Assembly: GCA_002104905.1 (NCBI GenBank) | Contig: MCFE01000285.1 | Span: 39,142 to 103,141, forward strand | Direction: 5' to 3' | DNA length: 64,000 nucleotides | DNA from: Basidiobolus meristosporus CBS 931.73 | Taxonomy: Eukaryota; Fungi; Basidiobolomycota | Shown: piece by piece, positions 41,485 through 64,000 of the stretch | How positions within the stretch are numbered: the stretch's first letter is position 1 | How the letters are laid out: each line of letters opens with the position of its first letter | Position numbers and translations under genes: made by a program | Notes under the pieces: generated by a model | Databases searched by the model: none | Told to the model about the DNA's origin: nothing | The model's input: the letters and a program-made list of their open reading frames with translations, nothing else

Positions 41485-41857
41485 ACATGACTGCGGCATT
41501 GGGGTGCATGCATTGGCGCATTAACATCTCATTTGTACAAATTTTATCAATCAGCAAACGAGCCATATATTGATGTCTGCGATCAATTGGTGAAGAAATT
41601 ATCAAACTGACTACATTCGCAGCATTGGTGTTGATTTACTTTCTCGATGTGTGGCTGTGATTCGATGCTCAAGGCCAAACTCAACTATACTTCACAAAAG
41701 GGTGACTCTCGTCTGGTTTATTTTATGTTGCGTATTGCAGTGATCTTCAATAGGTTCACTCTTTCCGATTTTGTATGCCATTAGCTTTGTTATGTCACAA
41801 TGAGTGATGCAGCTGTCTACCACATTCGGTGTGGCTTCTGATGAGGGTTGCGGATAC

Positions 41858-43205
41858 CTACTGGCTCTGGTCTAGTTCCACAATCACCTTGCCTCTGCAA
41901 CGACCGCTCAACTGCCTCTCAAAGGCCTCCAACGACTGGTCAAACGAGAATACCGAGTCCACCACCGGTTTGAGTGCACCTGAAATGGCCATATGTGTCG
42001 GTGAAATTGCTCGCCATCAAGCCTGCTTACTCGTCTTACCTTCCGCTATCAATTTTCTTACTTCTTCGAGTTGAGCTTCATCAGTGGAACCAGAGAACAT
42101 GATGTAATTCGGGTGGCCAATGAAACTCCATGCTTTCCTTGATACTAGACGAGCACCATTTCTCAACAACCAGGTGTATCCACCGATTTTGTGTTCATCA
42201 CCGACAATAGTGATGAAGGATCCAGAAGGTTTGAGGATTCTGGTGGCTTCTTCGTACGCCTAGTCAAGTATTAACCCAGTTATCTACAGGATCCCTGCCC
42301 TGAGTTACTACTTACCTCAACACCACCGACACAGTCGAACACTAGGTCGACCAAATCATCTTTCAGTACATCGGCCACATCTGCTATGGTGTAATCGATG
42401 ACCTGATCGGCTCCGAGCGATCTGACCAGTTCCTCATTTCTACCGGAGCATGTACAAATCACGTAGGCTCCAAAATGCTTCGCCAATTGGATCGAGACGG
42501 TTCCTGTGGAGATAGATCTATTAGCGGAGACAGAATGGTGCAGCATACAACCCATGGGCACCCACCAACCCCACCACTTCCGCCCAGGATCAGCACTCGC
42601 ATGGATTGCTTGATTGCCCCTCTTTGGACAAGTCCTTGCCACGCTGTGACCGATACCAGTGGCAGTCCAGCGAGTTCGGTATCAGTAAGATTCTCCGGAG
42701 CCTTGACCAGACAAGTCTCGTCGGATGTGCAGTACTCCGCAAGTCCCCCATCCTTGACAAAAGCGATAAGGCATTCAAGATATGATACTAGGCTTAGGTA
42801 TTTAGTAATCTTACCATCATCATTTGCAGATAGCCAAAGACTTTGTCGCCAATCTTGAACTTGGATGCATGGCTTCCAACACTGACCACTGTTCCCACGA
42901 CATCCACGCCGGGAGTATGAGGTCTCTTGATGAGTTTATTAACTATGTTGTCCTCCATGGCCTGATTCAGGGCAATGGAAAGCCCGAAGTTAGTATCACC
43001 TACACAAAGAATGCTGCCGTGAGCACAATACCTTGGAGTCTACTGGGTTTAAGCTAGTGGCATGGACTTTCAATAGCACCTCTTTTGACTTGGGTGGCAA
43101 GACCGGTACGTTGGTTTCGAGCTTTAGTACCTGTGTTGGGGTCCCACACCCGGACCAACGCCAGGCACGCATTTCCGTAGGTATCTTATCAGGGCTCGAA
43201 GGCAT
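41858..43205 (-). CDS. MDR-family NAD(P)H:quinone oxidoreductase / RTN4IP1-like, copy 1
   Basis: VLLKVHATSLNPVD, PGVDVVGTV, LPLVSVTAWQGL, VLILGGSGGVGT, LVRSLGADQVIDY, GRCRGKVIV. Confidence 0.9.
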
Positions 43206-44605
43206 GAGGACTGTTGAATGAGTATGTTTGCTCACCACTGAAGGAGTGATTAGTTAACAAACATAAGGTCAATTAAACTCCATTTATATATGAGGCTGGC
43301 CAATGAGATGAATCATCACTTTGGAACGTGCTTTAAGGAAGGAGTGATAATCCGTGATGATTATTGGCTGGGAGAAGATCACCCCCGGGATTCAGTTATC
43401 GCACGAAATATTAACATTAAATTCGACCTGGTAACGATATATTAGATGGTGGCTGAGGAACCTCTGAGGAAGCTTGTACGAATAGGGTTAATCAACTTGG
43501 TTAAATTTGGACTGATTCCTAACTAGAGGGAAGTAGATGATTGTTACCTCAGTATACTGTACAGAGATTGCCAAGAGCTAACAGGTGTGTTTATTAGTCA
43601 CTCTCAGGTGGATGTTGGGACGTTACATTATATGATGATGAATGCGACGTACTGCTCTCTTTCGCAGCCTTCATCAATAGTAGATTGTAGAGTTCTGGAA
43701 GTGATTGGGTAACAAACTTGGGAAAAACAACCCTTACATGGGCTGTGATGTGGGCTAAGTTGGAGGCCTTTTAGAATATATCATTGTTTCCATTGACGTT
43801 TGGTATTGATTCAAAGATATAGACTAGGTATGGGATCAGAGTATGTGAATCATTGGTATTGCCTCTAATTTACTCAATTTTATTTTCTAGTGAGCACTTA
43901 ACAGCAAGTGGACATACAAATTGTGTGGGCTTGCTGAGAGCACATCCAAATATGAGTTCCTTCGTTATGGAGTAAATCAATATATTACTTGCTGGCCTGT
44001 TGATGTACGATGACTATTCAAGCAGTTGTAGTGCGTTTATGTAATACATATTTATATACCTAATCAAGTCCTCAAAAACTTGAAATACTTGATCTGTAAC
44101 GGCGTATGATGTGGCCCTGCTCTACTGATTTTTGATCTGCATTAATCACCGAAAATCCCCGAGTATTGGCGTTCAGTACTCAATTTGAAACATACCCCAA
44201 TATTACATTCCAAAAATACCGAAGTATTGACTTGGATTGTGATTTCAATGAGCAATATCACTTGCCACCAGAGGGAACCATTGCTAAGCTATGCATCAGT
44301 TTTGGCGGTCTGCGAAGGTGCCATATATTGACGATCAGGATCAATTGGTGAGGTTAAGACCAAACTGACTTCATTCGCAGCACTAACCTTCGCGAATTAT
44401 AACTGCAATAAGGCGATTGGGGTTAAGCCTAACTATATTTCCCGTAGAGATGACCCTCGTCTGGTTTATTTTATGTTGCGTATTGCAGTGATCTTCAATA
44501 GGTTCACTCTTTCCAATTTTGTATGCCATTAGCTTTGTTATGTCACAATGAGTGATGCAGCTTTCTACCACATTCGGTGTGGCTTCTGATGAGGGTTGCG
44601 GATAC

Positions 44606-45953
44606 CTACTGGCTTTGGTCTAGTTCCACAATCACCTTGCCTCTGCAACGACCGCTCAACTGCCTCTCAAAGGCCTCCAGCGACTGGTCAAACGAGAATA
44701 CCGAGTCCACCACCGGTTTGAGTGCACCTGAAATGGCCATATGTGTCGGTGAAATTGCTCGCCATCAAGCCTACTTACTCGTCTTACCTTCCGCTATCAA
44801 TTTTCTTACTTCTTCGAGTTGGGCTTCATCAGGGAACCCAGTAAACATGATGTAATTCGGGTGGCCAATGAAACTCCATGCTTTCCTTGATACTGAGCGG
44901 GTGCTATTTCTCAGCAACCAGGTGTATCCACCGATTTTGTGTTCATCGCCGACAATAGTGATGAAGGATCCAGAAGGCTTGAGGATTCTGGTGGCGCTTT
45001 TGTACACCTAGTCGATCTTTAGTCTAGTGACCTGCAGGACCCTGTTCTGAGCTACTACTTACCTCAACACCACCGACACAGTCGAACACTAGGTCGACCA
45101 AATCATCTTTCAGTACATCGGCCACATCTGCTATGGTGTAATCGATGACCTGATCGGCTCCGAGCGATCTGACCAGTTCCTCATTTTTACCGGAGCATGT
45201 ACAAATCACGTAGGCTCCAAAATGCTTCGCCAATTGGATCGAGACGGTTCCTGTGGAGATAGATCTATTAGCGGAGACAGAATGGTGCAGCATACAACTC
45301 ATGGGCACCCACCAACCCCACCACTTCCGCCCAGGATCAGCACTCGCATGGATTGCTTGATTGCCCCTCTTTGGACAAGTCCTTGCCACGCTGTGACCGA
45401 TACCAGTGGCAGTCCAGCGAGTTCGGTATCAGTAAGATTCTCTGGAGCCTTGACCAGGCAAGTCTCGTCGGATGTGCAGTACTCCGCAAGTCCCCCATTC
45501 TTGATAAATAAGGATGAGTCCTTCGATGCATAATACTGAATTTGGATAACTTAAAAGCGAACCATCCTCAATTGTAGATAGCCAAAGACTTTGTCGCCAA
45601 TCTTGAACTTGGATGCATGGCTTCCAACACTGACCACTGTTCCCACGACATCCACGCCGGGAGTATGAGGTCTCTTGATGAGTTTATTAACTATGTTGTC
45701 CTCCATGGCCTGATTCAGGGCAATGGACAGCCCGAAGTTAGTATCACCTACGCAAAGAATGCTGCCGTGAGCACAATACCTTGGAGTCTACTGGGTTTAA
45801 GCTAGTGGCATGGACTTTCAATAGCACCTCTTTTGACTTGGGTGGCAAGACCGGTACGTTGGTTTCGAGCTTTAGTACCTGTGTCGGGATCCCACACTTG
45901 GACCAGCGCCAGGCACGCATTTCCGTAGGTATCTTATCAGGGCTCGAAGGCAT
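44606..45953 (-). CDS. MDR-family NAD(P)H:quinone oxidoreductase / RTN4IP1-like, copy 2
   Basis: Tandem duplicate of copy 1 (offset 2748 bp) with the same exon structure. Confidence 0.9.
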
Positions 45954-46708
45954 GAGGACTGTTGAATGAGTATGTTTGCTCACCACTGAAGGAGTGATTA
46001 GTTAACAAACATAAGGTCAATTAAACTCCATTTATATATGAGGCTGGCCAATGAGATGAATCATCACTTAGGAACGTGCCTTATGCATGAATGGTAGTCG
46101 ATGATTGTCATTGGCTTAAGGGTGACCATCCTAGGATGTAGCGACCTCATCGAATACATATTAATATTGATTAAATCAGACTTTTTCTCAGCGACAGGCT
46201 ACTAACGAAATATTAGGTGATGGCTGAAGAAGTGCTGAAGCTGTATGACTGAGGATGGTCAAAACTGTCAATAAACGTACTCGTACGAGTGTAAATTTAT
46301 AATATCCAAACAAATCCCACACTAGCCATGAATGCTTGCGTCCAGCGTTTTGGAGTTTAACGTATTTTATAACTCCATCATCAAGACCTAATTCGGATTT
46401 GAGCGTGATTGAAGTAGCACAGTGCATATGTCGGCGACAGGATAAAGATTGATTCTGGAAGACCTATGGTGTGTAATACTCTCCAAATTGGAAAGATCAT
46501 TGGATCGTCAATGTAAGGCAAAGGTTGGGCTAGAAGGATTACCAGATCATAGGGTTCGCTACCAGTTGTCGGTACGATGGTGGAGATCTTGATTGTACTC
46601 ACAATACTATCCAGAAAACATTCAAGATTAAACGAACTGCTTTTGCTTTTATTTTACATCCTATTTATACTAATTTTACAACCCAGCGAACACCATTGGC
46701 GTTTCCAA

Positions 46709-48328
46709 TCAACATTCGATGGTATCAAATTTCCGGAAGATCCAGTAGAAGATGACAGTCATGACTCCCATCAGTCCGGTTTGGATTCCGAACACATACA
46801 CAAAGTTGGGGTCGTTGCTCCACACTGCAAGGATCAGGCCAATCAGACTGCCACCACAGTTGGTGAACAGGAAAAGAGAGGTCACCACCGACTTGAGCTC
46901 GGGGGCGGCTTGTCGGAAGGCGAACTCCAGGCCGGTGACTGAGGCGAAGATCTCGGAGATGGAGATTCCAATGAACGGGATCACTTGCCACCAGATGGAG
47001 ATGTCGTTGACTGGTTGCTCACCCTCGGGCAGGCCACTCAAATCGGTGAAGTTGTAGTAGGGGCCGGTCTTGTAGACCTGTGCTTGGAGAACGGTGACAT
47101 AGACAAAGGCAAGTGTGGCAATTGTGAACCCGATGGTGATGCGTGTGATGGGACCAAGACGGCAGCCCATTCTTCTCAGCAATGGGAAGACAGCCGTGTC
47201 AAAGATAGGGATGGCAATTACCAGGACAAGGCTGTTGACCAGGTTCAGCTGCTCGGGCCCACTGATGAACGATGGTCTTTGCATCGTCAGTCCCATGTTG
47301 ATGAAGTTGTCGGACATGTTGTAGTACAGAGCCCAGTAGAAGGGATAGAACAGGAACACCAAGCAAGCGCGCAGGGTTTTCTTGAGATCCTCGATGAACT
47401 GATCGTCCCACTCAAAGCCATCCACCTTGGCGTAGTCCAGCCAGTGCTCGATGGGCCCATTGGTCTTGGCATTGTCCAACGGGGCCTTGCGATGGGACAG
47501 GGCATACTTGATGCAGGAGTATGTCTTCGAGAGGACAGTGCCGGATGGAGGCTTGACATAGTACAGCTTTTTGGCGGACACGAAGATCACGAGGCCAATC
47601 ACGAACATTATCGCTGGCAGCGAGTAGGCTAGAGGATAGGATCCGTAGTCGTTGGCAACGATGGGACAGATGAACTGGCCCAGCAAGGCGCCGCAGTTGA
47701 TGGCCCAGTAGAAGAAGCGGAAGATGCGCTCAACGGTGAGCTGTGAGTCGGTGTAGACACCAGGGGTCTTGGTCGGGAAGATCCCTTCCTTGATCTGCTC
47801 AGCGGCAAAGGAGGAAACATTGGACTTGATGCCGCCGGTGCCGAAGGAGATGAAGACATACAGGGCAATCACGAAGCCGATCACACCGAAGCTTCCATCC
47901 AGAGAGGCTGGGAGGGAGCTGACTGCCAGGAACACCAAGCCCACCATGTAGAAGAGGGAGAATATGACGATGGTCTTGAACTTTCCGATGTAGCGGTCGG
48001 CAACGACGGCACCAAGAATAGTGGTGCAATAGGCCAGAAACTGGAAGCCTCTGTTCACGGCGGTGGCAGTGCTCTTGTTGAAGCCAAGAACCTTGAGCAT
48101 GTAGGGTTGGAACAGAAGCGAGGCACCGTAGAAGGCAAAGCGCTCGCACAGCTCGGTGATGATGATGAACCAGGCCGCGAGGGGGACCTTTCCAGCAACG
48201 CGTAGCTTGATGTCATCGGAGTTGGGAGGATCATCTTGTGCAGCATCGATGTGCTCCACTTGGGTAGACTTTTCGAAGGGTTTTTCTTCGCTCATAGTTG
48301 TTGTAGGGAATTTCTGAGGAAACAGCAT
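46709..48328 (-). CDS. PTR2: POT/PTR proton-dependent oligopeptide transporter, copy 1 (539 aa, intronless)
   Basis: ELCERFAFYG (ExxERFxYY), GAVVADRYIG, GTGGIKSNVSSFAAEQ, FYWAINCGAL; about 12 hydrophobic segments. Confidence 0.96.
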   Translation of the reverse strand: MLFPQKFPTTTMSEEKPFEKSTQVEHIDAAQDDPPNSDDIKLRVAGKVPLAAWFIIITELCERFAFYGASLLFQPYMLKVLGFNKSTATAVNRGFQFLAYCTTILGAVVADRYIGKFKTIVIFSLFYMVGLVFLAVSSLPASLDGSFGVIGFVIALYVFISFGTGGIKSNVSSFAAEQIKEGIFPTKTPGVYTDSQLTVERIFRFFYWAINCGALLGQFICPIVANDYGSYPLAYSLPAIMFVIGLVIFVSAKKLYYVKPPSGTVLSKTYSCIKYALSHRKAPLDNAKTNGPIEHWLDYAKVDGFEWDDQFIEDLKKTLRACLVFLFYPFYWALYYNMSDNFINMGLTMQRPSFISGPEQLNLVNSLVLVIAIPIFDTAVFPLLRRMGCRLGPITRITIGFTIATLAFVYVTVLQAQVYKTGPYYNFTDLSGLPEGEQPVNDISIWWQVIPFIGISISEIFASVTGLEFAFRQAAPELKSVVTSLFLFTNCGGSLIGLILAVWSNDPNFVYVFGIQTGLMGVMTVIFYWIFRKFDTIEC

Positions 48329-49985
48329 GGAGGATGAGGTAGCTTTTATTAGTTGTCAGCCGAGCTTAATTCAACCAAGTGACAGATTTGAGAATATTGA
48401 CAGATAGGAATGTAGCCAATTCAGGCAGCAGAATCACGGGATTATTTGCAACGAAATCCGGTCAATTATACTTGATTCATCCATAAAGTAGGATTGATAA
48501 GCCTTTATAGCTAACCTGACGAGTTGTATCAAATCAAGATTGGGAGAGATGCCAGACATGATTACCAAATATGTACTCAGGGTTTTTCTGATCCATTGTG
48601 ATAGATTACAGCCCAACACTACAAATTGACATTTCGTGATTTCCTATTCGGTCCAATGCTGACAACTCCAGATATTGGGTACGTCCTTTATCATTAAGCA
48701 GCCCTTCCAGATGGTTGTGGATATCATTATTACAGATTGAGTAGCATATTTAGTATGCGCTACCAATAAAGTTGCTCAATTAATAGTATAAAAGGCCAAC
48801 CCTGACCACCACATATCTCATTAAGTTGTAGATCATCTTTATTTGATGCTTCCTTGTCAGCAAGAAATCATTCCCATACATAACTGAAGTACACTTTTTT
48901 TGTCCATCTCAATAGTATATATCATATTTCTGAGCGTTTGTGCACTGCAAGTTGAGTTATATAGTGTGCAAGGTAATCAAAAAGTAGAGCGTTTTTGTAG
49001 TCAAGCAGAATGTTAAATGTATATCATAAGGGATTCTATTGTACGAGATATAGTTCAATACTACATAGTATCGATTATCACCCATAGATGAGATGGTACA
49101 CAAGTATTGATGATAAGATAAACAGTTCTGAAGTGATGGTACATTATCTTGGCTGACCCATCAGGGATTTCTTCCACTTTGCTACGAAGAATGGATAACT
49201 AGTGAAATTGCTATATGTAATGGTAGCCAAATCTGATCGAAAACACCTCTATTGAATACAATAGTTGAGTAGCTTCAAAATAATCTATTGCTGATATCAT
49301 GCTATTTTATATGCACAAGTGCTGCTGCCAATGTGCCAAGATTTCACCGTCAATATTGCGCAAACATAGAGTCATGAAATAGCATGAATGGAAGTAAAAA
49401 CTTGAAGTATCCACAGGTTCTGCAGCTCGTGTATCTAGTTTATAGATCAATATCCGCATTTTTATACGACTCTAATTGCAAGGACTACTTTATCCTAGAG
49501 ACGTTGCGTATACAGACATCGTGACATTTTATTTTGGCATTGCATATGATCAGCATTTTCCTATTTACCACTAGTAATCATGAATCCAAATATGGACGGC
49601 GAATCTGCTTTTAGTTTCTCAACAAGCTTCGTTTACTCAATTTTGATCCTCAAAAAATCAAAAAGTTGGAAAATTTGGCATTCAGTATTTATTTTGCAAC
49701 ATCCTAAAGCAATAGGTACACATGATTGCTCCAAGTATTTCGAAGGGCAATATTGGCACGAAGTGCGATTGATGGCTACTTGCTACAGAAATTTAGTGAG
49801 TAAATACTCCAACGAATACGATTCTTGACAGTTTACTAGCACAATGGCGAAATTTTTAATGACAACATTAACATTTTCAAACTATCATAGAAATCACTCA
49901 AGATTAAACGAACTGCTTTTGCTTTTATTTTACATCCTATGTATACTAATTTTACAATCAGGTAGATACCTTCTGGCACCTCCTA

Positions 49986-51605
49986 TCAACACTCAATGGC
50001 ATCAAACTTCCGGAAGATCCAGTAGAAGATGACAGTCATGACTCCCATCAGTCCGGTTTGGATGCCGAACACATACACAAAGTTGGGGTCGTTGCTCCAC
50101 ACTGCAAGGATCAGGCCAATCAGACTGCCACCACAGTTGGTGAACAGGAAAAGAGAGGTCACCACCGACTTGAGCTCGGGGGCGGCTTGTCGGAAGGCGA
50201 ACTCCAGACCGGTGACTGAGGCGAAGATCTCGGAGATGGAGATTCCAATGAACGGGATCACTTGCCACCAGATGGAGATGTCGTTGACTGGTTGCTCACC
50301 CTCGGGCAGGCCACTCAAATCGGTGAAGTTGTAGTAGGGGCCGGTCTTGTAGACCTGTGCTTGGAGAACGGTGACATAGACAAAGGCAAGTGTGGCAATT
50401 GTGAACCCGATGGTGATGCGTGTGATGGGGCCAAGACGGCAGCCCATTCTTCTCAGCAATGGGAAGACAGCCGTGTCAAAGATAGGGATGGCAATTACCA
50501 GGACAAGGCTGTTGACCAGGTTCAGCTGCTCGGGCCCACTGATGAACGATGGTCTTTGCATCGTCAGTCCCATGTTGATGAAGTTGTCGGACATGTTGTA
50601 GTACAGAGCCCAGTAGAAGGGATAGAACAGGAACACCAAGCAAGCGCGCAGGGTTTTCTTGAGATCCTCGATGAACTGATCGTCCCACTCAAAGCCATCC
50701 ACCTTGGCGTAGTCCAACCAGTGCTCAATGGGCCCATTGGTCTTGGCATTGTCCAACGGGGCCTTGCGATGGGACAGAGCATACTTGATGCAGGAGTATG
50801 TCTTCGAGAGGACAGTGCCGGATGGAGGCTTGACATAGTACAGCTTTTTGGCGGACACGAAGATCACGAGGCCAATCACGAACATGATCGCTGGCAGCGA
50901 GTAGGCCAAGGGATAGGATCCGTAGTCGTTGGCAACGATGGGACAGATGAACTGGCCCAGCAAGGCGCCACAGTTGATGGCCCAGTAGAAGAAGCGGAAG
51001 ATGCGCTCAACGGTGAGCTGTGAGTCGGTGTAGACACCAGGGGTCTTGGTCGGGAAGATCCCTTCCTTGATCTGCTCAGCGGCAAAGGAGGAAACATTGG
51101 ACTTGATGCCGCCGGTACCAAAGGAGATGAAGACATACAGGGCAATCACGAAGCCGATCACACCGAAGCTTCCATCCAGAGAGGCTGGGAGGGAACTGAC
51201 TGCCAGGAACACCAATCCCACCATGTAGAAGAGGGAGAATATGACGATGGTCTTGAACTTTCCGATGTAGCGGTCAGCAACGACGGCACCAAGAATAGTG
51301 GTGCAATAGGCCAGAAACTGGAAGCCTCTGTTCACGGCGGTGGCAGTGCTCTTGTTGAAGCCAAGAACCTTGAGCATGTAGGGTTGGAACAGAAGGGAGG
51401 CACCGTAGAAGGCAAAGCGCTCGCACAGCTCGGTGATGATGATGAACCAGGCCGCGAGGGGGACCTTTCCAGCAACGCGTAGCTTGATGTCATCGGAGTT
51501 GGGAGGATCATCTTGTGCAGCATCGATGTGCTCCACTTGGGTAGACTTTTCGAAGGGTTTTTCTTCGCTCATAGTTGTTGTGGGGAATTTCTGAGGAAAC
51601 AGCAT
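49986..51605 (-). CDS. PTR2: POT/PTR transporter, copy 2
   Basis: Differs from copy 1 by 1 aa. Confidence 0.96.
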   Translation of the reverse strand: MLFPQKFPTTTMSEEKPFEKSTQVEHIDAAQDDPPNSDDIKLRVAGKVPLAAWFIIITELCERFAFYGASLLFQPYMLKVLGFNKSTATAVNRGFQFLAYCTTILGAVVADRYIGKFKTIVIFSLFYMVGLVFLAVSSLPASLDGSFGVIGFVIALYVFISFGTGGIKSNVSSFAAEQIKEGIFPTKTPGVYTDSQLTVERIFRFFYWAINCGALLGQFICPIVANDYGSYPLAYSLPAIMFVIGLVIFVSAKKLYYVKPPSGTVLSKTYSCIKYALSHRKAPLDNAKTNGPIEHWLDYAKVDGFEWDDQFIEDLKKTLRACLVFLFYPFYWALYYNMSDNFINMGLTMQRPSFISGPEQLNLVNSLVLVIAIPIFDTAVFPLLRRMGCRLGPITRITIGFTIATLAFVYVTVLQAQVYKTGPYYNFTDLSGLPEGEQPVNDISIWWQVIPFIGISISEIFASVTGLEFAFRQAAPELKSVVTSLFLFTNCGGSLIGLILAVWSNDPNFVYVFGIQTGLMGVMTVIFYWIFRKFDAIEC

Positions 51606-52422
51606 GGAGGATGAGGTAGCTTTTATTAGTTGTCAGCCAAGCTTAATTCAACCAAGTGACAGATTTGAGAATATTGACAGATAGGGATATAGCCAATTTA
51701 GGTAGTTGACCCACTGTTTTATTTCAAGCACAATCCAGTCAATTATACTTAAATAGGTAGCTCTTTCAGAAGGGTAGTTAACCTGAATTAATTTTTAGTC
51801 ATCTGTTTACTTATCAAGATTTGCCAATCATTTAACCTTTTATGTACTGAGTATTTGCCTAGAGTAATTATCGGTTTGAGATCTTGGCCATATTCCAATA
51901 CTGACCCCTAACCCCATCCAAATACAGATAACAACCAATCATGCCCTCTAGGCAACGACATTGGAAAGCTTTGATAGTTGTTTTGTAAGCACACGGGGCA
52001 AGGTCAAATTAGCAGCAATATTACCCAGTAGCTTGGCTATGGAGCTTATTGTAAATGATTGGTAGTACTTCAAATCCAGTGATTTCCTTTCTAGTTTTAT
52101 AACTAAAGGCTAATTGACTGTTACTCTAAAGATATAAAAGTCACTCTCTCACTACATATGTAGCTTAACCATATTGTACATCTCTCCAAGCTTGGTCGAA
52201 TGGATGACTGCATTATCAATAAATCAGTGAATGTAATGCCCACTTCCATATGCTCGGAATTAATTGCTTATCATGTGGAGGGAGATTCTCTTCTGGAATA
52301 GCAGACAGCATTATTACTCTGTTGGGTTGGTTACTTTCCCTGCATTGTCGTATCACCTCGAGCCCTTTATATTTGGTGGCCTTCGTTCTTCAGGCAGTAG
52401 GTACGGCACTATTGGTGCAACT

Positions 52423-53599
52423 ATGGCGAAGCTAATCACCTTTTTCATTGCAGTTGCTATCGTTCACTCAACCGTTGGTGCCGTTCTTCCTCGTGGAAAC
52501 GAAGTTTATATACTTCCGATTCGTCGTTCATTTGCCCCTGCGTCCAGTATATCGCGTAGAGGTGTGTATATTAGAACAGTAGGAAGCATCCCGGCTCAAA
52601 GCAATGTGGTTCATGTAATTACTTTTTTCATTCCACTATATCGTCGATTCTGAATAGTAATGAAGCATACCTATATATACACAGTATACCGCCTCCATTG
52701 GGATCGGAACTCCACCTACTTCCTATGATCTTCTGATCGATACCAATTCTGCCAATACATGGGTAGGAGCACAGAAGGCCTACGTTCATACCAGCACCTC
52801 CACTCAGACTGCAGATTCGGTTTCCGTCACTTATGGAAGTGGTTCATTCTCGGGAACCGAGTTCAGCGATACGGTGACGATTTCGCCTGGATTGGTGGTT
52901 CAATCTCAATCAATTGGGGTAGCTTCCTCATCTCAAGGGTTTACCGACTGCAACGGGATACTTGGTTTAGGTCCAGTTGATCTAACCCTTGGCACGTTAT
53001 CTCCCAGCACTGGCTCCACAGTCCCTACCGTTGTGGACAACCTGTTTTCACAAGGTACAATCCCTAGCAATGTTTTTAGCCTCTCATTTGAGCCATCTAC
53101 TTCGCTGACTTCCACGAATGGTGAGATTACGTTTGGTGGCACGGATTCAACCAAATACACTGGCAGCATTGCTTATGCTCCTATCACTGCAACATCTCCG
53201 GCAAGGGATTTTTGGGGTGTTGACGGGTCCTTCCGATATGGTGCTTCTGAGCCTACATTGTCAACTACTGCCGGATCCGTTGATTCGGGCACAGCATTAC
53301 TCTTACTGCCAACAGATGCATTCCAAAAATACTTGAAAGCAACAGGAGCGGTGATTGATAAAGCTACTGGGTTGCCCAAGCTTACTTCAGCCCAATTCGC
53401 CAAACTGAAGTCGCTTTTCATTACCATTGGAGGCACTACACTAGAGCTCACTGCAAATGCCTGCATATTTCCTCGGGCATTAAACACTCAAATCGGTGGA
53501 GAGGCTGGGGGTATCTATCTTGCATTTGGTGATTTAGGTTCGAACTCAGGTGCCGGTTTAGATTTCGTTTTGGGGCTGACGTTCCTGGAGAGGAAATAA
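52423..53599 (+). pseudogene. Secreted A1 aspartic protease, copy 1, C-terminally truncated
   Basis: Signal peptide; intron 52615-52684; LLIDTNSANTW and VDSGTALL; ends FLERK* where copy 2 continues for 25 aa. Confidence 0.85.
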
Positions 53600-54304
53600 T
53601 AATGAAGCTCAGTTTTGATATGGTAACGAGAAGAGTATTTAAGGGTATTTCGTTCTCCCTGGCATAGAGAAGCACACAATCATACCCTTCGACACCCATG
53701 CATACATATTGTTGTGAGTTTGAAGTAGCACAGCATATTTAGTTGAACAGCAACATTCTCGTAATGAGATCTGGGTGGAATAGAAGTTGAACATCAAAAA
53801 ATAGTTGTAGTGAAGGTCAGTAGGCTATTCGGTATATGCAACGGTAGCCTAAACTTCACATCATTTCTCAAATGCTCAGCAAGATTGGTAAATACCGTTA
53901 GAATTATAACTCAGTTATAGTGAATAATATTCAAGTAATACAAAGTTATGATACAAGTGCTACATATTTGCGGAACTGACCGCTTTCCTACGCTCATATG
54001 CTGCGAATATGTTAACACAAATCTTATAAAACTTGAGTTGACAGTCAGTGTTACACTTGGCAATAAAAAGCGAAGAGTATGAGCATTGACACGTATTATT
54101 CGTCTGTACATCACCGATAGTTAGATAAAGATTCAAAAATTTACGAGCTGCGACTGCTTGCTACAGAGCTCCAAAGCTTTTGAAATTATGAGTTAGTCCA
54201 ATATACCACGCTTATTGGTTTACAAATTATATGCATCCGCATTTATTTTTACATCCTATTTATACTAATTTTACAATCAGGTAGATACCTTCTGGCACCT
54301 CCTA

Positions 54305-55924
54305 TCAACACTCAATGGTATCAAACTTCCGGAAGATCCAGTAGAAGATGACAGTCATGACTCCCATCAGTCCGGTTTGGATGCCGAACACATACACAAA
54401 GTTGGGGTCGTTGCTCCACACTGCAAGGATCAGGCCAATCAGACTGCCACCACAGTTGGTGAACAGGAAAAGAGAAGTCACCACCGACTTGAGCTCGGGG
54501 GCGGCTTGTCGGAAGGCGAACTCCAGGCCGGTGACTGAGGCGAAGATCTCGGAGATGGAGATTCCAATGAACGGGATCACTTGCCACCAGATGGAGATGT
54601 CGTTGACTGGTTGTTCACCCTCGGGCAGGCCACTCAAATCGGTGAAGTTGTAGTAGGGGCCGGTCTTGTAGACCTGTGCTTGGAGAACGGTGACATAGAC
54701 AAAGGCAAGCGTGGCAATTGTGAACCCGATGGTGATGCGTGTGATGGGACCAAGACGGCAGCCCATTCTTCTCAGCAATGGGAAGATGGCCGTGTCAAAG
54801 ATAGGGATGGCAATTACCAGGACAAGGCTGTTGACCAGGTTCAGCTGCTCGGGCCCACTGATGAACGATGGTCTTTGCATCGTCAGTCCCATGTTGATGA
54901 AGTTGTCGGACATGTTGTAGTACAGAGCCCAGTAGAAGGGATAGAACAGGAAGACCAAGCAAGCGCGCAGGGTTTTCTTGAGATCCTCGATGAACTGATC
55001 GTCCCACTCAAAGCCATCCACCTTGGCGTAGTCCAGCCAGTGCTCAATGGGCCCATTGGTCTTGGCATTGTCCAACGGGGCCTTGCGATGGGACAGAGCA
55101 TACTTGATGCAGGAGTATGTCTTCGAGAGGACAGTGCCGGATGGAGGCTTGACATAGTACAGCTTTTTGGCGGACACGAAGATCACGAGGCCAATCACGA
55201 ACATGATCGCTGGCAGCGAGTAGGCCAGGGGATAGGATCCGTAGTCGTTGGCAACGATGGGACAGATGAACTGGCCCAGCAAGGCGCCGCAGTTGATGGC
55301 CCAGTAGAAGAAGCGGAAGATGCGCTCAACGGTGAGCTGTGAGTCGGTGTAGACGCCAGGGGTCTTGGTCGGGAAGATTCCTTCCTTGATCTGCTCAGCG
55401 GCAAAGGAGGAAACATTGGACTTGATGCCGCCGGTGCCGAAGGAGATGAAGACATACAGGGCAATCACGAAGCCGATCACACCGAAGCTTCCGTCCAGAG
55501 AGGCTGGGAGGGAGCTGACTGCCAGGAACACCAATCCCACCATGTAGAAGAGGGAGAATATGACGATGGTCTTGAACTTTCCGATGTAGCGGTCAGCAAC
55601 GACGGCACCAAGAATAGTGGTGCAATAGGCCAGAAACTGGAAGCCTCTGTTCACGGCGGTGGCAGTGCTCTTGTTGAAGCCAAGAACCTTGAGCATGTAG
55701 GGCTGGAACAGAAGGGAGGCACCGTAGAAGGCAAAGCGCTCGCACAGCTCGGTGATGATGATGAACCAGGCCGCGAGGGGGACCTTTCCAGCAACGCGTA
55801 GCTTGATGTCATCGGAGTTGGGAGGATCATCTTGTGCAGCATCGATGTGCTCCACTTGGGTAGACTTTTCGAAGGGCTTTTCTTCGCTCATAGTTGTTGT
55901 GGGGAATTTCTGAGGAAACAGCAT
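54305..55924 (-). CDS. PTR2: POT/PTR transporter, copy 3
   Basis: Differs from copy 1 by 1 aa. Confidence 0.96.
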   Translation of the reverse strand: MLFPQKFPTTTMSEEKPFEKSTQVEHIDAAQDDPPNSDDIKLRVAGKVPLAAWFIIITELCERFAFYGASLLFQPYMLKVLGFNKSTATAVNRGFQFLAYCTTILGAVVADRYIGKFKTIVIFSLFYMVGLVFLAVSSLPASLDGSFGVIGFVIALYVFISFGTGGIKSNVSSFAAEQIKEGIFPTKTPGVYTDSQLTVERIFRFFYWAINCGALLGQFICPIVANDYGSYPLAYSLPAIMFVIGLVIFVSAKKLYYVKPPSGTVLSKTYSCIKYALSHRKAPLDNAKTNGPIEHWLDYAKVDGFEWDDQFIEDLKKTLRACLVFLFYPFYWALYYNMSDNFINMGLTMQRPSFISGPEQLNLVNSLVLVIAIPIFDTAIFPLLRRMGCRLGPITRITIGFTIATLAFVYVTVLQAQVYKTGPYYNFTDLSGLPEGEQPVNDISIWWQVIPFIGISISEIFASVTGLEFAFRQAAPELKSVVTSLFLFTNCGGSLIGLILAVWSNDPNFVYVFGIQTGLMGVMTVIFYWIFRKFDTIEC

Positions 55925-56990
55925 GGAGGATGAGGCAGCTTTTATTAGTTGTCAGCCAAGCTTAATTCAACCAAGTGACAGATTGAGAATATTGACAGAT
56001 AGGAATGTAGCCAATTCAGGCAGCAGAATCACGGGATTATTTGCAACGAAATCCGGTCAATTATACTTGATTCATCCATAAAGTAGGATTGATAAGCCTT
56101 TATAGTTAACCTGACGAGTTGTATCAAATCAAGATTGGAGAGAGATGCCAGACATGATTACCAAATATGTACTCAGGGTTTTTCTTATCCATTGTGATAG
56201 ATTACAGCCCAACACTACAAATTGACATTTCGTGATTTCCTATTCGGTCCAATGCTGACACCTCCAGATATTGGGTACGTCCTTTATCATTAAGCAGCTC
56301 TTCCAGATGGTTGTGGATATCATTATTACAGATTGAGTAGCATATTAATATGCGCTACCAATAAAGTTGCTCAATTAATAGTATAAAAGGCCAACCCTGA
56401 CCACCACATATCTCATTAAGCTGTAGATCATCTTTATTTGATGCTTCCCTATCAGCAAGAAATCATTTCCATACATAACTGAAGTACACTTTTTTTGTCC
56501 GTCTCAATAGTATATATCATATTTCTGTGCGTTTGTGCACTGTAAGTTGAATTATATAGTGTGCAAGGTAATCAAAAAGTAGAGCGTTTTTGTAGTCAAG
56601 CAGAATGCTAAACATACATCATAAAGGAGTCTATTGCGCGAGGTATAGTTCAATACTACATAGTATCGATTATCAGCCATAGATGAGATGGTACACAAGT
56701 ATTGCTCAACATGGTAAACAACTCTGAAGTGATGGTACATTATCTTGGCTGGCCCATCAGGGATTTCTTCTGCTTTGCTACAAAGAATGGATAACTAGTG
56801 AAATTGCTATATGTAATGATAGCCAAATCTGATCGAAAACACCTCTATTGGATACAATAGTTGAGTAGCTTCAAAATAATCTATTGCTGATATCATGCTA
56901 TTTTATATGCACAAGTGCTGCTTGTCAATGTGCCAAGATTTCACCGTCAATATTGCGCAAACATAGAGTCATGAAGTAAGCATGAATGGA

Positions 56991-57165
56991 AGGATCATCT
57001 TGTGCAGCATCGATGTGCTCCATTTGGTTAGACTTTTCGAAGGGTTTTTCTTCGCTCATAGTTGTTGTGGGGAATTTCTAAGGGAACAACATGGAGGATG
57101 AGGCAGCTTTTGTTTGTTCTCAGCCAAACTTAATTCAACCAAGTGACAGATTTGGCAAGATTGAC
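56991..57165 (-). pseudogene. 5' remnant of a fifth POT gene
   Basis: Matches the first ~34 codons and proximal upstream sequence of the POT genes; codon 5 is TAG (57078-57080). Confidence 0.9.
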
Positions 57166-57828
57166 ATATATAAATATAGCCACTTACGGAAAGAAGATTT
57201 TTTAGCTGCACGATTGACCATTAAACTTGATTGGGAAGTACATCGAGATATACACCAAAATACGTGATTGCGATCAGCTGGTATTGTGGATAACTCTCTG
57301 CTATATGGAATGACAACAGGAGTGTTGATAGCCATTACCAAAGACAGACCATTGAAAATAGCCAGATATGGGTGGCCGTTGTGATAGTTGACTATTCTCC
57401 AGAGGCGAGCCTGATGATAGCAGGAAGTAATATTCGTCCTTATATATTCTATTTAGCATATAGTATTTACGTGTTAGTGCACCAGAAGGGTTTGCTTTGC
57501 TCGTAAAGTTGAGTTTTATTGATTATCAGATGGTTCAATAGTAGAGTGTCAATATGAAGTTACCAATGTGCAGGAAATGGGAAAGTATGGCTCACTACAC
57601 GACTGCTAATGCTCCAGAAGTTAAACAAACTATATATTTCAATGCATAATTCAACTCGAAATGAAAAGTCACACAGTCAATAGATCGCTTTGCTCAATAC
57701 CAATATCGTTGGACAACTAGAGTTGTTCAACACTGAAATTGCGGAACGGTTTGATATGGTGATAAGATTAGAAATCTGCAATTAATTCTAATAAATCCGA
57801 AACTTTGCTGTTGTCCTTTACTCACAAC

Positions 57829-58293
57829 ATGCTGAGGGTCGAGAGAACAGACAGTAACGGTAAAGGCTTCAAACAATTGATAGCTGCCTTAGACGAGTAT
57901 CTAGCCATCGCTGATGGACATTTAAGTGAGGAGGAGCGAAATGCCTATGTGGAGCTAAATACTATCGAATACATAGACACAGTAGTTATGGCATACGATG
58001 ATGAGGAGCCCGTTGGCTGCGTCTGTTTCCGACCATATGATGCTCAAAAGGCCGAACTAAAAAGAATGTTTGTCGCCCCTGAAAAGAGGAAGTTGGGCGT
58101 TGCTTCGGCCGTAATCGCTGAATCGGAAAACTGGATCAAAGAATTAAACTTCAAGGAGATTATACTGGAAACTGGCCAGAACATGCAAGCAGCAATCAAC
58201 TTTTACACAAAGCAGGGATATGAACCTACTGACAGATATGGGGTATATGTTAATGCTCCGAACAGTGTTTGTATGAAGAAAGAGATTAAATAA
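57829..58293 (+). CDS. GNAT-family N-acetyltransferase, intronless, bacterial type (154 aa)
   Basis: PVGCVCFR, AELKRMFVAPEKRKLGVAS (motif A), ILETGQNMQAAINFYTKQGY (motif B), YG.Y...NSVCMKK C-terminus. Confidence 0.9.
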   Translation: MLRVERTDSNGKGFKQLIAALDEYLAIADGHLSEEERNAYVELNTIEYIDTVVMAYDDEEPVGCVCFRPYDAQKAELKRMFVAPEKRKLGVASAVIAESENWIKELNFKEIILETGQNMQAAINFYTKQGYEPTDRYGVYVNAPNSVCMKKEIK

Positions 58294-58889
58294 AGGTTGT
58301 GATATACTGATCTACAAATATAAGCCCTTAAGCCCTGTTATCATGGTAGACGTATTTATTTCGCGTGTAAAAAACCTTTCGTAAGAAAGGAATCGTTGAA
58401 TGTTTATGGGAATTAAGCAAGAACGATAGCATCTTTATGGTAAGTAAATAGGTGACCAATATCATGGAAATTATACCGAATTTTCGAGGTTCCTTATTAC
58501 TGCTTATTTCTTGAGATTGCCATATTGAAGTTGTGGTCCTGGAATCAATTAATTCCTATATTTTAGTTTTCTCTCTAGTAGACCAAAACCATCCTTGGTT
58601 TTACAAAGCTCAGAGAATTTAACAAATAAACCACCCAATCGTGTTGAGCAACGCAGTGGAAAGTAGCTATTTATTAGAGGTATATGTTGAAATCTAATAT
58701 ACATATATAATATATTTGCACTCAACTCTGCTACATACTGCTGAAATATTCAAAGCACATCCCTGAAATTCTGAATGCCAGCGATATTACCAAGTAAATA
58801 CTCACGAATAATTGAAACGCTATTGCTTTTATTTTACATCCTATGTATACTAATGTTACAATCAGGTGAACACCTTCTGGCACTTCCTA

Positions 58890-60509
58890 TCAACACTCGA
58901 TGGCATCAAACTTCCGGAAGATCCAGTAGAAGATGACAGTCATGACTCCCATCAGTCCGGTTTGGATGCCGAACACGTACACAAAGTTGGGGTCGTTGCT
59001 CCACACTGCAAGGATCAGGCCAATCAGACTACCGCCACAGTTGGTGAACAGGAAAAGAGAGGTCACCACCGACTTGAGCTCGGGGGCGGCTTGTCGGAAG
59101 GCAAACTCCAGACCGGTGACTGAGGCGAAGATCTCGGAGATGGAGATTCCAATGAACGGGATCACTTGCCACCAGATGGAGATGTCGTTGACTGGTTGCT
59201 CACCCTCGGGCAGGCCACTCAAATCGGTGAAGTTGTAGTAGGGACCGGTCTTGTAGACCTGTGCTTGGAGAACGGTGACATAGACAAAGGCAAGTGTGGC
59301 AATTGTGAACCCGATGGTGATGCGTGTGATGGGACCAAGACGGCAGCCCATTCTTCTCAGCAATGGGAAGATGGCCGTGTCAAAGATAGGGATGGCAACT
59401 ACCAGGACAAGGCTGTTGACCAGGTTCAGCTGCTCGGGCCCACTGATGAACGATGGTCTTTGCATCGTCAGTCCCATGTTGATGAAGTTGTCGGACATGT
59501 TGTAGTACAGAGCCCAGTAGAAGGGATAGAACAGGAAGACCAAGCAAGCGCGCAGGGTTTTCTTGAGATCCTCGATGAACTGATCGTCCCACTCAAAGCC
59601 ATCCACCTTGGCGTAGTCCAACCAGTGCTCGATAGGCCCATTGGTCTTGGCATTGTCCAACGGGGTCTTGCGATGGGACAGAGCATACTTGATGCAGGAG
59701 TAGGTCTTCGAGAGGACAGTGCCGGATGGAGGCTTGACATAGTACAGCTTTTTGGCGGACACGAAGATCACGAGGCCAATCACGAACATGATCGCTGGCA
59801 GTGAGTAGGCCAGGGGATAGGATCCGTAGTCGTTGGCAACGATGGGACAGATGAACTGGCCCAACAAGGCGCCACAGTTGATGGCCCAGTAGAAGAAGCG
59901 GAAGATGCGCTCAACGGTGAGCTGCGAGTCGGTGTAGACACCAGGGGTCTTGGTCGGGAAGATTCCTTCCTTGATCTGCTCAGCGGCAAAGGAGGAAACA
60001 TTGGACTTGATGCCGCCGGTGCCGAAGGAGATGAAGACATACAGGGCAATCACGAAGCCGATCACACCGAAGCTTCCATCCAGAGAGGCTGGGAGGGAGC
60101 TGACTGCCAGGAACACCAAGCCCACCATGTAGAAGAGGGAGAATATGACGATGGTCTTGAACTTTCCGATGTAGCGGTCAGCAACGACGGCACCAAGAAT
60201 AGTGGTGCAATAGGCCAGAAACTGGAAGCCTCTGTTCACGGCGGTGGCAGTGCTCTTGTTGAAGCCAAGAACCTTGAGCATGTAGGGCTGGAACAGAAGC
60301 GAGGCACCGTAGAAGGCAAAGCGCTCGCACAGCTCGGTGATGATGATGAACCAGGCCGCGAGGGGGACCTTTCCAGCAACGCGTAGCTTGATGTCATCGG
60401 AGTTGGGAGGATTATCTTGTGCAGCATCGATGTGCTCCACTTGGGTAGACTTTTCGAAGGGTTTTTCTTCGCTCATAGTTGTTGTGGGGAATTTCTGAGG
60501 AAACAGCAT
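58890..60509 (-). CDS. PTR2: POT/PTR transporter, copy 4
   Basis: Differs from copy 1 by about 5 aa. Confidence 0.96.
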   Translation of the reverse strand: MLFPQKFPTTTMSEEKPFEKSTQVEHIDAAQDNPPNSDDIKLRVAGKVPLAAWFIIITELCERFAFYGASLLFQPYMLKVLGFNKSTATAVNRGFQFLAYCTTILGAVVADRYIGKFKTIVIFSLFYMVGLVFLAVSSLPASLDGSFGVIGFVIALYVFISFGTGGIKSNVSSFAAEQIKEGIFPTKTPGVYTDSQLTVERIFRFFYWAINCGALLGQFICPIVANDYGSYPLAYSLPAIMFVIGLVIFVSAKKLYYVKPPSGTVLSKTYSCIKYALSHRKTPLDNAKTNGPIEHWLDYAKVDGFEWDDQFIEDLKKTLRACLVFLFYPFYWALYYNMSDNFINMGLTMQRPSFISGPEQLNLVNSLVLVVAIPIFDTAIFPLLRRMGCRLGPITRITIGFTIATLAFVYVTVLQAQVYKTGPYYNFTDLSGLPEGEQPVNDISIWWQVIPFIGISISEIFASVTGLEFAFRQAAPELKSVVTSLFLFTNCGGSLIGLILAVWSNDPNFVYVFGIQTGLMGVMTVIFYWIFRKFDAIEC

Positions 60510-61325
60510 GGAGGATGAGGCAGCTTTTATTAGTTCTCAGCCAAGCTTAATTCAACCAAGTGACAGATTTGAGAATATTGACAGATAGGGATATAGCCAA
60601 TTTAGGTAGTTGACCCACTGATTTATTTCAAGCAAAATCCAATCAATTATACTTAAATAGGTAGCTCTTTCAGAAGATAGTTAACCTGAATCAATTTTTA
60701 GTCATCTGTTTACTTATCAAGATTTGCCAATCATTTAACCTTTTATGTACTGAGCATTTGCCTAGAGTAATTATCGGTTTGAGATCTTGGCCATATTCCA
60801 ATCCTGACCCCTAACCCCATCCAAATACAGATAACAACCAATCATGCCCTCTAGGCAACGACATCGGAAAGCTTTGATAGTTGTTTTGTAAGCACACGGG
60901 GCAAGGCCAAATTAGCAGCAATATTACCCAGCAGCTTGGCCATGGAGCTTATTGTAAGTAATTGGTGGTACTTCAAATCCAGTGATTTCTATTCTAATTT
61001 TATAACTAAAGGCTAATTGACTGCTACTCTAAAGATATAAAAGTCACTCTCTCACTACATATGTAGCTTAACCATATTGTACATCTCTCCAAGCTTGGTC
61101 GGAAGGATAAGTGCATTATTATATATATTATTAATGTAACATCCACTCCCATATGCTCGGAATTAATTGCTTATTATGTGGAGGGAAATTCTCTTCTGGA
61201 ATAGCACGCGGCATTATTACTTTGTTGGGCTGGCTGCTTCCCCTGCATTTTCGTATCACTCCGAGCCCTTTATATTTGGCGGCCTTCGTTCTTCAGGCGG
61301 TAAGTACGGCACTATTGGAGCAACT

Positions 61326-62633
61326 ATGGCTAGATTAATCACCCTTTTCATTGCAGTTGCTATTGTTCACCCAACCTTTGGTGCCGTTCTTCCTCGTGGA
61401 AACGAAGTTTATACACTTCCGATTCGTCGTTCATTTGCCCATGCGTCCAGTATATCGCGTAGAAGTGTGTATGCTAGAGCAGTAGGAAGCATCCCAGCTC
61501 AAAGTAATGTGGTCCATGTAACTACTTTTTTCATTCCACTATATCGTCGATTCTGAATAGTAATGAAGCATACCTATATATACACAGTATACCGCCTCCA
61601 TTGGGATCGGAACTCCACCTACTTCCTATGATCTTCTGATCGATACCAATTCTGCCAATACATGGGTAGGAGCACAGAAGGCCTACGTTCATACCAGCAC
61701 CTCCACCCAGACTGCAGATTCGGTTTCCGTCACTTATGGAAGTGGTTCATTCTCGGGAACCGAGTTCAGCGATACGGTGACGATTTCGCCTGGATTGGTG
61801 GTTCAATCTCAATCAATTGGGGTAGCTTCCTCATCTCAAGGGTTTACCGACTGCGACGGGATACTTGGTTTAGGTCCAGTTGATCTAACCCTTGGCACGT
61901 TATCTCCCAGCACTGGCTCCACAGTCCCTACCGTTGTGGACAACCTGTTTTCACAAGGTACAATCCCTAGCAATGTTTTTAGCCTCTCATTTGAGCCATC
62001 TACTTCGCTGACTTCCACGAATGGTGAGATTACGTTTGGTGGCACGGATTCGACCAAATACACTGGCAGCATTGCTTATGCTCCTATCACTGCAACATCT
62101 CCGGCAAGGGATTTTTGGGGTGTTGACGGGTCCTTCCGATATGGTGTTTCTGAGTCTATCTTGTCAACTACCGCCGGATCCGTTGATTCAGGCACAACAT
62201 TACTCTTACTGCCAACAGATGCATTCCAAAAATACTTGAAAGCAACAGGGGCGGTGATTGATAAAGCTACTGGGTTGCCCAAGCTTACTTCAGCCCAATT
62301 CGCCAAGCTGAAGTCGCTTTTCATTACCATTGGAGGCACTACACTAGAGCTCACTGCAAATGCCTGCATATTTCCTCGGGCATTAAACACTCAAATCGGT
62401 GGAGAGGCTGGGGGTATCTATCTTGCATTTGGTGATTTAGGTTCGAACTCAGGTGCAGGCTTAGATTTCATTTTGGGGCTGACGTTCCTGGAGAGGTTCT
62501 ATAGTGTATACGACGCAGATAACAAGAGAGTTGGTAAGTTGATAGCTTACGGAGGCCCTCGTTTTCTTTGTGCTAATATTCGTTATGCTTAGGTTTCGCC
62601 ACTACTCGTTTCACACATGCGAACACGAATTGA
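61326..62633 (+). CDS. Secreted A1 aspartic protease (polyporopepsin-like), copy 2, full length (392 aa, 3 exons)
   Basis: Exons 61326-61517, 61588-62533, 62593-62633; signal peptide and propeptide; DTN and DSG motifs; flap VTYGSGS; DGILGLG; FLERFYSVYD...RVGFA. Confidence 0.92.
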
Positions 62634-62959
62634 TTCCATACCATTGATTGCGTATCTCTTATACCAAGATTATACTTTTGCATGCATACGTGAAGTATAC
62701 CTAATAAATGAATAAGTAGACTTTTGCGTGACAATTAATCCCAATGCACCAGTGTTGAAATTTTTTGAAAAGGAGGGTTTCGGAATGCAGTGCATCACCT
62801 GTGGCCACCCTGTGAATTGTAATGTTACTATCTAATACAAGCTAACTATTTCTGAAGGATCGTTATACCAACACTCTGATATAGGAATCATGTATAGCAA
62901 TAGTAATAATAATGAAGCTCAGTTTTGATATGGTAAAGAGAAGAGTATTTGAGGGTATC

Positions 62960-64000
62960 GAATCAAGATTGAGGGAGATGTCAGACATGATTGCCAAATA
63001 TGTTCTCAGGGTTTTTCTTACCCATTGTGATAGATTACAGCCCAACACTACAAATTGTCATTTTGTGATTTCCTATTCGGTCCAATGCTGACAGCTCCAG
63101 ATATTGGGTTCGTCCTTTATCGTCAAGCAGCTCTCAGATAGTTTTGGATATCATTATTACAAATTGAGTAGCATATTTAGTATGCACTACCAACCAAGTT
63201 ATTCAATTAATAGTAAAGAAGGCTAACCCTAAACACCACATATCTCATTAAGTTGTAGATCATCTTTATTTGATGCTTCCTTGTCAGCAAGAAATCATTC
63301 CCATACATAACTGAAGTACACTTCTTGCGTTAATCCCAATAATACAGATCATATTTCTGAGAGTTTGTGCGCTGCAAGTTGAGTTGAAAGTGTGCAAGGG
63401 AATCAAAAAGTAGATTGTGCTTATAGTCAAGCAGAATGTTAAATGTATATCATAAGGGATTCTATTGTACGAGATATAGTTCAATACTACATAGTATCGA
63501 TTATCAGCCATAGATGAGATGGTACACAAGTATTGATCATAAGATAAACAGTTCTGAAGTGATGGTACATTATCTTGGCTGAACCCATCAGGGATTTCTT
63601 CTGCTTTGCTACAAAGAATGGATAAGTAGTGAAATTGCTACATGTAATGATAGCCAAATCTGATCGAAAACACCTCTATTGAATACAATAGTTGAGTAGC
63701 TTCAAAATAATCTATTGCCGATATCATGCTATTTTATATGCACAAGTGCTGCTGCCAATGTGCCAAGATTTCACCGTCAATATTGCGCAAACATAGAGTC
63801 ATGAAATAGCATGAATGGAAGTAAAAACTTGAAGTATCCACAGGTTCTGCAGCTCGTGTATCTAGTTTATAGATCAATATCCGCATTTTTATACGACTCT
63901 AATTGCAAGGACTACTTTATCCTAGAGACGTTGCGTATACAGACATCGTGACATTTTATTTGGCATTGCATATGATCAGCATTTTCCTATTTACCACTAG
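62960..64000. repeat. Third copy of the ~1 kb non-coding spacer of the POT array (others at ~48530-49574 and ~56110-56990)
   Basis: Long colinear matches, e.g. gattacagcccaacactacaaattg and gtgccaagatttcaccgtcaatattgcgcaaacatagagtc. Confidence 0.9.

Follow-up and report, generated by a model that had tools for sequence, protein, structure and literature searches.

The right-hand part of a 64,000-nucleotide stretch of the Basidiobolus meristosporus CBS 931.73 genome (contig MCFE01000285.1) carries an array of near-identical peptide transporter and aspartic protease genes. This whole stretch is called the window below, and window positions equal contig positions minus 39,141. The array was mapped with open reading frames (ORFs), Pfam matches and self-BLAST, and it contained four intact transporter genes of the POT/PTR2 family (POT1 to POT4), two A1 protease genes, one GNAT gene, one 5' remnant of a POT gene and three copies of a sequence referred to as spacer A (Table 1). 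An original prediction, made from the nucleotide letters alone, had proposed a co-amplified cassette of secreted proteases and peptide carriers. Its order of elements was correct on this map, and its gene identities (POT, A1 protease and GNAT) were right by Pfam. The last base of the window, 64000, is also the end of the contig, and the assembly break falls within spacer A.

The repeated blocks were 94-98% identical to one another by self-BLAST. POT2 with protease 1 (49891-53593) matched POT4 with protease 2 (58796-62496) at 96.6% over 3.7 kb, which agrees with the predicted pair of head-to-head genes duplicated as a block across the same intergenic region of about 820 bp. POT1 with spacer A (46645-49394) matched POT3 with spacer A (54239-56992) at 97.0%, and the spacer A copies at 48526-49574 and 62955-64000 matched at 94.2%. 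Block duplication on this scale is far beyond chance. Furthermore, junctions specific to single copies were recovered in short-read contigs from DNA runs of the same strain, and therefore the array was not invented by assembly.

Table 1. Features of the transporter-protease array, in window coordinates.
Feature	Position	Strand	Description	Basis or remark
POT1	46709..48328	-	intact PTR2-family peptide:H+ symporter gene	no protease partner, spacer A upstream; Pfam PTR2 E=1.8e-78
Spacer A copy 1	48474..49985	.	full length, non-coding, AT-rich	repeat map
POT2	49986..51605	-	intact	head-to-head with protease 1
Divergent intergenic region copy 1	51606..52422	.	817 bp	self-BLAST
Protease 1	52423..53599	+	polyporopepsin-like A1, C-terminally truncated	exon 1 52423-52614, exon 2 52685-53599
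POT3	54305..55924	-	intact, without protease partner	ORF, Pfam PTR2
Spacer A copy 2	56069..56992	.	partial, 925 bp	repeat map
POT 5' remnant	56987..57182	-	196 bp: about 106 bp coding and about 90 bp upstream	about 90% identical to intact POT starts
GNAT	57805..58293	+	small acetyltransferase gene	Pfam Acetyltransf_1 E=2.7e-17
POT4	58890..60509	-	intact	head-to-head with protease 2; RNA-like contig over 58922-60478
Divergent intergenic region copy 2	60510..61325	.	816 bp	no coverage in RNA-like run X3
Protease 2	61326..62633	+	intact polyporopepsin-like A1, 392 aa	exons 61326-61517, 61588-62533, 62593-62633
Spacer A copy 3	62955..64000	.	cut by contig end	overlapping contig L005 runs on into fifth POT

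Each of the four POT genes is a 539-codon minus-strand ORF that matched Pfam PTR2 (PF00854) with an E-value of ~1e-78 over profile positions 1-378 of 392. The match to the oligopeptide:H+ symporter model TIGR00926 (E=5.8e-94) scored below the curated cut-off because that model spans 671 positions. The translated products carry the family motifs ELCERFAFYG at residue 59 (ExxERFxYY-type, transmembrane helix 1) and FYWAINCG at residue 206 (FYxxINxG, transmembrane helix 5). A crude hydropathy scan gave 8 peaks above threshold, where a 12-helix MFS topology is expected. The nearest relatives outside the genus were PTR2 proteins of Zoopagomycota and Mortierellomycota (53-61% identity). The PTR2 domain, the motifs and a length of about 530 aa are shared with the fungal PTR2 symporters (POT/SLC15, TC 2.A.17), among them Ptr2 of Saccharomyces cerevisiae and Candida albicans and PTR2A of Hebeloma. 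The B. meristosporus genes, which are predicted to encode such importers, differ in that at least nine near-identical copies lie in tandem and segmental arrays.

We compared 11 POT ORFs, taken from the window and from loci L004, L005 and L001 of the same genome, and all 11 were intact. The mean numbers of synonymous (dS) and nonsynonymous (dN) substitutions per site were 0.054 and 0.0024, respectively. Every compared copy is under strong purifying selection, with a dN/dS ratio of about 0.045. This includes POT1 (0.013-0.056 against the other copies), which, like POT3, has no protease partner. The POT1- or POT3-type unit equals the POT4-type unit minus about 2.26 kb, comprising most of the intergenic region, the protease and the protease 3' flank; this difference may have arisen by deletion or by insertion alike. 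Upstream of the start codon, only about 145 bp and a short TAGYTAACCTGA stretch were common to all four POT copies. Because POT1 and POT3 are without most of the shared intergenic region, that region appears to be unnecessary for POT expression. The spacer A copies diverged by 5-6%, close to the POT dS. Taken together, these values suggest that the copies arose in a single burst, after which purifying selection acted on every POT gene.

Both protease genes matched PF00026, in line with the A1 proteases of the original prediction, but protease 1 turned out to be truncated. It has a 408-bp deletion, equivalent to 62497-62904 in the protease 2 region, and it ends in ...FLERK* without the last 25 residues (FYSVYDADNKRVGFATTRFTHANTN). 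Its C-terminal strand is absent, and the Pfam match ends at profile position 270 of 315. The deletion junction was also found in an independent DNA run of the same strain (X2), which shows that the deletion is genuine. In protease 1, the 64 codons of exon 1 have 10 nonsynonymous changes, corresponding to a dN/dS of about 0.5. Among the intact protease copies few sites differ and most of the differences are synonymous, although these counts are small.

The gene model of protease 2, derived from the alignment of both copies, coincides with the coordinates of the public gene model, and its second intron was confirmed by a spliced contig of the RNA-like run X3 that skips exactly 59 nt with GT..AG ends. 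Exon 2 was 67% identical to the solved chain of Irpex lacteus polyporopepsin. Protease 2 holds the flap TYGSGSFSG and the C-terminal strand ...FYSVYDADNKRVGFATT, and its N-terminus, MARLITLFIAVAIVHPTFG/AV, looks like a signal peptide. The 392-aa protease found on contig 337 and on L005 (P0121) was 99% identical to protease 2 over exon 2 and matched PF00026 with E=1.1e-48 (profile positions 2-314 of 315). The likeness to I. lacteus polyporopepsin (MEROPS A01) consists of 67% identity over the mature enzyme, the length, the flap, the second catalytic motif and the C-terminal ...RVGFATT. The Basidiobolus copies differ from it in having DTNS rather than DTGS as the first catalytic motif and a shorter propeptide, and one of the window copies is truncated.

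The DTNS motif (61642-61653 in protease 2 and 52739-52750 in protease 1) was found in every Basidiobolus copy, including both copies of Basidiobolus ranarum, which are about 69% identical. In comparison, DTGS was present in 115 of the 120 nearest homologues and in 86 of about 130 representatives. A1 peptidases almost always have Gly at this place in the first motif, and some pregnancy-associated glycoproteins are held to be inactive because this Gly is replaced. In the wider family, about 25 of the 150 representatives had lost it, many of them also with a degenerate second motif, so non-catalytic offshoots seem to be common. These observations could mean that the Basidiobolus protease is catalytically impaired or re-purposed, either into a secreted protein with a pepsin fold that binds peptides or into an enzyme with changed specificity, and that its link with the transporter is not one of bulk digestion. 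However, both catalytic Asp residues, the flap Tyr (TYGSGS), the Ser after the first motif and the second motif DSGT are conserved across about 31% interspecies divergence, which fits retained catalysis, and Asn tolerates backbone angles like those of Gly better than any other residue. We consider impairment or re-purposing improbable; catalytic activity of the DTN protease is possible but cannot be assumed. We found no literature description joining DTN with DTG in aspartic proteases. The nearest proteins outside the genus were polyporopepsins of Agaricomycetes (67-69% identity). Horizontal transfer of the protease gene from Agaricomycetes, suggested by these top matches, was rejected on the basis of a quick tree, which gave no sign of transfer: the Basidiobolus proteases fell not within Agaricomycetes but in a supported clade of 6 rows, together with a Mortierellomycota protein, metagenome sequences and one sequence labelled Athelia.

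Near-copies of the module were detected on three other B. meristosporus contigs (337, 1194 and 1047), and the head-to-head pairing was again present there. The 13.8-kb contig MCFE01001194.1 (L005) overlaps window positions 57149-64000 (6.85 kb) with 99.6% identity, runs through spacer A into a fifth POT gene and is then gene-free for about 5 kb; it may be the continuation of the window contig or an allelic copy. The array as first delimited therefore holds up to the end of the window, which is the contig end inside spacer A, but falls short of the full extent, since L005 adds the fifth POT gene and near-copies lie on the three further contigs. On contig 337, the order is Sec1, POT, GNAT, a POT head-to-head with a 392-aa protease, spacer A, a second head-to-head POT-protease pair and POT. 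In the second protease of this contig, 144 bp are deleted and with them the DTN motif, the first active-site motif. The right flanks of contig 337 and L005 are about 93% identical, whereas the left flanks differ, with Sec1 on contig 337 and two alcohol dehydrogenase genes in the window. The 18.7-kb contig MCFE01001047.1 (L001) holds a further copy of the module with frameshifts. One POT gene there (L001:9968-11581) needs three frame changes, and it is either a pseudogene or part of a poorly polished contig. The contigs point to at least two arrays, each with four to five intact POT genes, one intact and one broken protease gene, and a GNAT gene.

Several features of these contigs raise the question of whether copy number was inflated by assembly, with the four contigs representing alleles, homeologues or redundant haplotigs of one locus in a large, possibly polyploid genome and the true array being smaller. 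L005 overlaps the window end at 99.6%, the frameshifts in L001 are typical of a poorly polished contig, and the contig break at the window end falls within a repeat. Basidiobolus genomes are reported to be very large (PMC3281927). Against inflation, the four POT copies in the window differ at about 3% of sites and have distinct junctions in short-read contigs, and the left flank of contig 337 differs from that of the window. In DNA runs X1 and X2, the summed depth of POT was about 3-8 times that of GNAT and about 1-2.4 times that of protease; depth is not copy number, but these ratios roughly agree with the assembled copy ratios. As an account of the whole set of copies, inflation is very improbable; it is unlikely for the copies inside the window and possible for the small contigs.

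Directly to the left of the array lies a tandem pair of zinc-type alcohol dehydrogenase genes (41551-43369 and 44310-46117, about 91.7% identical); tandem duplications are common in this part of the contig. The right flank of the arrays, which is free of genes (L005:11400-13795), shares dispersed repeats (78-90% identity) with window positions 14894-21207; these are presumably transposon remains. An older POT paralogue of B. meristosporus (P0003, 80% identical) sits among arrestin genes with no protease neighbour. In a sequencing run of another isolate with the same species label, almost nothing matched the locus at 95% identity or above, and this run was left out of the synteny comparison.

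Conservation of the pairing was assessed in relatives. The DTN protease occurs twice in B. ranarum, at loci L006 and L014, in both cases without a POT gene upstream. At L006, the upstream sequence of 822 bp reaches as far as the C-terminus of a same-strand CAP-domain gene (PF00188, E=1e-8), and no POT was found within 2.8 kb downstream of the protease. At L014, no POT was present in the 4.4 kb upstream of the protease. No close B. ranarum POT orthologue was found in the protein database with either a full-length or an N-terminal-half query, which is not proof of absence. No protease adjoins POT in Neoconidiobolus thromboides, Conidiobolus coronatus or Piptocephalis, and the Haplosporangium protease locus had no POT neighbour. 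Neither B. ranarum copy of the protease nor any of these four early-diverging fungi thus showed the pairing, a result that the original prediction had named as refuting its cassette. In C. coronatus, two POT genes stand head-to-head about 3.9 kb apart (L008:2475-9599), an independent local POT duplication. These comparisons indicate that the POT-protease pairing is specific to the amplified B. meristosporus family and younger than the split from B. ranarum, and that all pairs are copies of a single juxtaposition event; in that case, the number of pairs gives no independent support for the pairing.

RNA-like data were available from one run (X3), which is labelled 'DNA?' and has no label for growth condition, and contig depth was used as the measure. 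The X3 contigs covered only GNAT (depth ~755), POT (~264) and the protease exons (12-17, spliced), with nothing over the intergenic region or spacer A in the region of window positions 57750-63700. Because coverage was confined to exons and one contig was spliced, X3 is almost certainly RNA of the same strain. The POT contig stops exactly at the start codon of the public model (60478), with adapter sequence beyond. POT, protease and GNAT were all transcribed in the X3 sample. The contig depths of POT and protease differed about 15-20 fold, although contig depth is a poor measure of expression. Counts of GATA and CCAAT motifs in the intergenic region were unremarkable and were not used as evidence.

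The GNAT gene adjoins the array on every contig that bears the module, in degenerate form on L001. A role as a specific resistance enzyme linked to peptide uptake is no more than a possibility, as the NCBIfam and PDB matches of the gene were all generic and none reached a curated cut-off. Spacer A was rejected as a hidden gene, RNA or transposon: no Rfam match, tRNA or tandem repeat was found in it, and its ORFs had no Pfam hit. It had no further copy in the window beyond those mapped and zero coverage in the RNA-like run.

As described above, the POT genes are uniformly intact and constrained, and each array appears to hold a broken as well as an intact protease gene. We consider it probable that the locus reflects dosage amplification of a peptide importer with the linked protease carried along and one working protease kept per array. 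According to this scheme, a proton-coupled di/tripeptide importer gene of the PTR2 type would have been amplified in the B. meristosporus lineage during the most recent ~5% of neutral divergence. Once B. ranarum had split off, one POT copy would at some stage have gained a head-to-head neighbour, the gene of a secreted aspartic protease resembling polyporopepsin. The POT bodies and spacer A form direct repeats, and unequal crossing-over between them could then have multiplied both POT-only and POT-plus-protease units, and a larger segment would have been copied to at least one second locus. Selection would act on transporter dosage, as suggested by the intact and constrained state of all POT copies; one functional protease per array seems to be sufficient, and surplus protease copies would decay. 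By analogy with other fungi, both products may belong to one nitrogen-scavenging pathway, in which an acid protease acts outside the cell, the products are trimmed further and the peptides are imported. The anatomy of the array, the integrity of its copies, their pattern of selection, the missing pairing in relatives and the transcription of all three gene types were observed, whereas we infer secretion, substrates, dosage selection and any co-regulation.

The alternative is a true digest-and-import cassette, in which protease and POT share a bidirectional nitrogen-regulated promoter and the pair is the selected unit, amplified for feeding on gut, dung or insect protein. The head-to-head pair is block-duplicated at 96.6%, an intact pair is retained in both arrays, and both genes are transcribed in X3. 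In Paxillus involutus, protein induces polyporopepsin-type proteases together with a PTR2 transporter (PMC4282482), which makes a link between protease and importer plausible at the pathway level. However, half of the POT copies are without the protease and most of the promoter region and are equally constrained, and surplus proteases are broken, by the 408-bp deletion here and by the 144-bp deletion on contig 337. Furthermore, every pair appears to derive from one juxtaposition, the pairing is missing at both B. ranarum copies and in four other fungi, contig depths are about 15-20 fold apart in the single RNA-like run, and the non-canonical DTN motif leaves activity in doubt. For these reasons the selected-pair explanation seems unlikely to us, although it is the strongest of the alternatives. 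The block duplication and the pathway plausibility invoked in the original prediction stand, but a co-selected and co-amplified unit is not favoured, because of the single event, the constrained POT-only units, the broken proteases, the unconserved pairing, the DTN motif and the depth gap.

Several points nevertheless weigh against passenger-type amplification. Linkage could still be favoured, since each array keeps one intact protease head-to-head with a POT gene, with mostly synonymous differences in small counts. Logan contig depth is a poor expression measure and comes from a single unlabelled run, so co-induction on protein is possible. In B. ranarum, where the assembly is in fragments, the search gave no close POT, and loss in that species instead of gain in B. 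meristosporus is possible. Selection on dosage is argued from the intactness of the copies. Finally, L001 and L005 may be redundant or allelic, which makes the true copy number uncertain.

Dosage amplification with a carried-along protease resembles other lineage-specific tandem expansions of nutrient transporters, which likewise show direct repeats, intact copies under purifying selection, and neighbours that are carried along and decay. Unlike in those expansions, the passenger here is the gene of a functionally related secreted enzyme, so a cooperative reading is possible. SAP2 with OPT/PTR2 in C. albicans and protein degradation in P. involutus likewise combine a secreted aspartic protease with peptide importers for growth on protein. 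The genes of those fungi are co-regulated and not known to form a physical cluster, whereas those of B. meristosporus are physically linked, in an arrangement that relatives do not share.

On present evidence, the locus is best read as transporter dosage amplification with a passenger gene in decay, and mostly as an ordinary gene-family expansion. It also calls for caution in that repeated adjacency within an amplified array represents one event and not many. The genus-wide occurrence of DTN in place of catalytic DTG is a small, testable enzymological curiosity. A more far-reaching proposal, which we regard as doubtful, is that the array is a newly assembled nutrient-acquisition cluster, in which the DTN polyporopepsin homologue and PTR2 would be driven from one bidirectional nitrogen-responsive promoter and the POT-only copies would raise uptake capacity. 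We found no literature description of a Basidiobolus, PTR2-aspartic protease or polyporopepsin-peptide transporter cluster, nor of a fungal POT-A1 cluster, and such a cassette would therefore be new. If true, it would be the first physically clustered module of protease and peptide importer described in a fungus, caught at birth, as it is absent from B. ranarum. If the two genes are co-induced, the array would show, as is rarely possible, how a cluster for nutrient scavenging forms in an early-diverging fungus, and it would offer a handle on protein feeding by a fungus of the vertebrate gut and dung.

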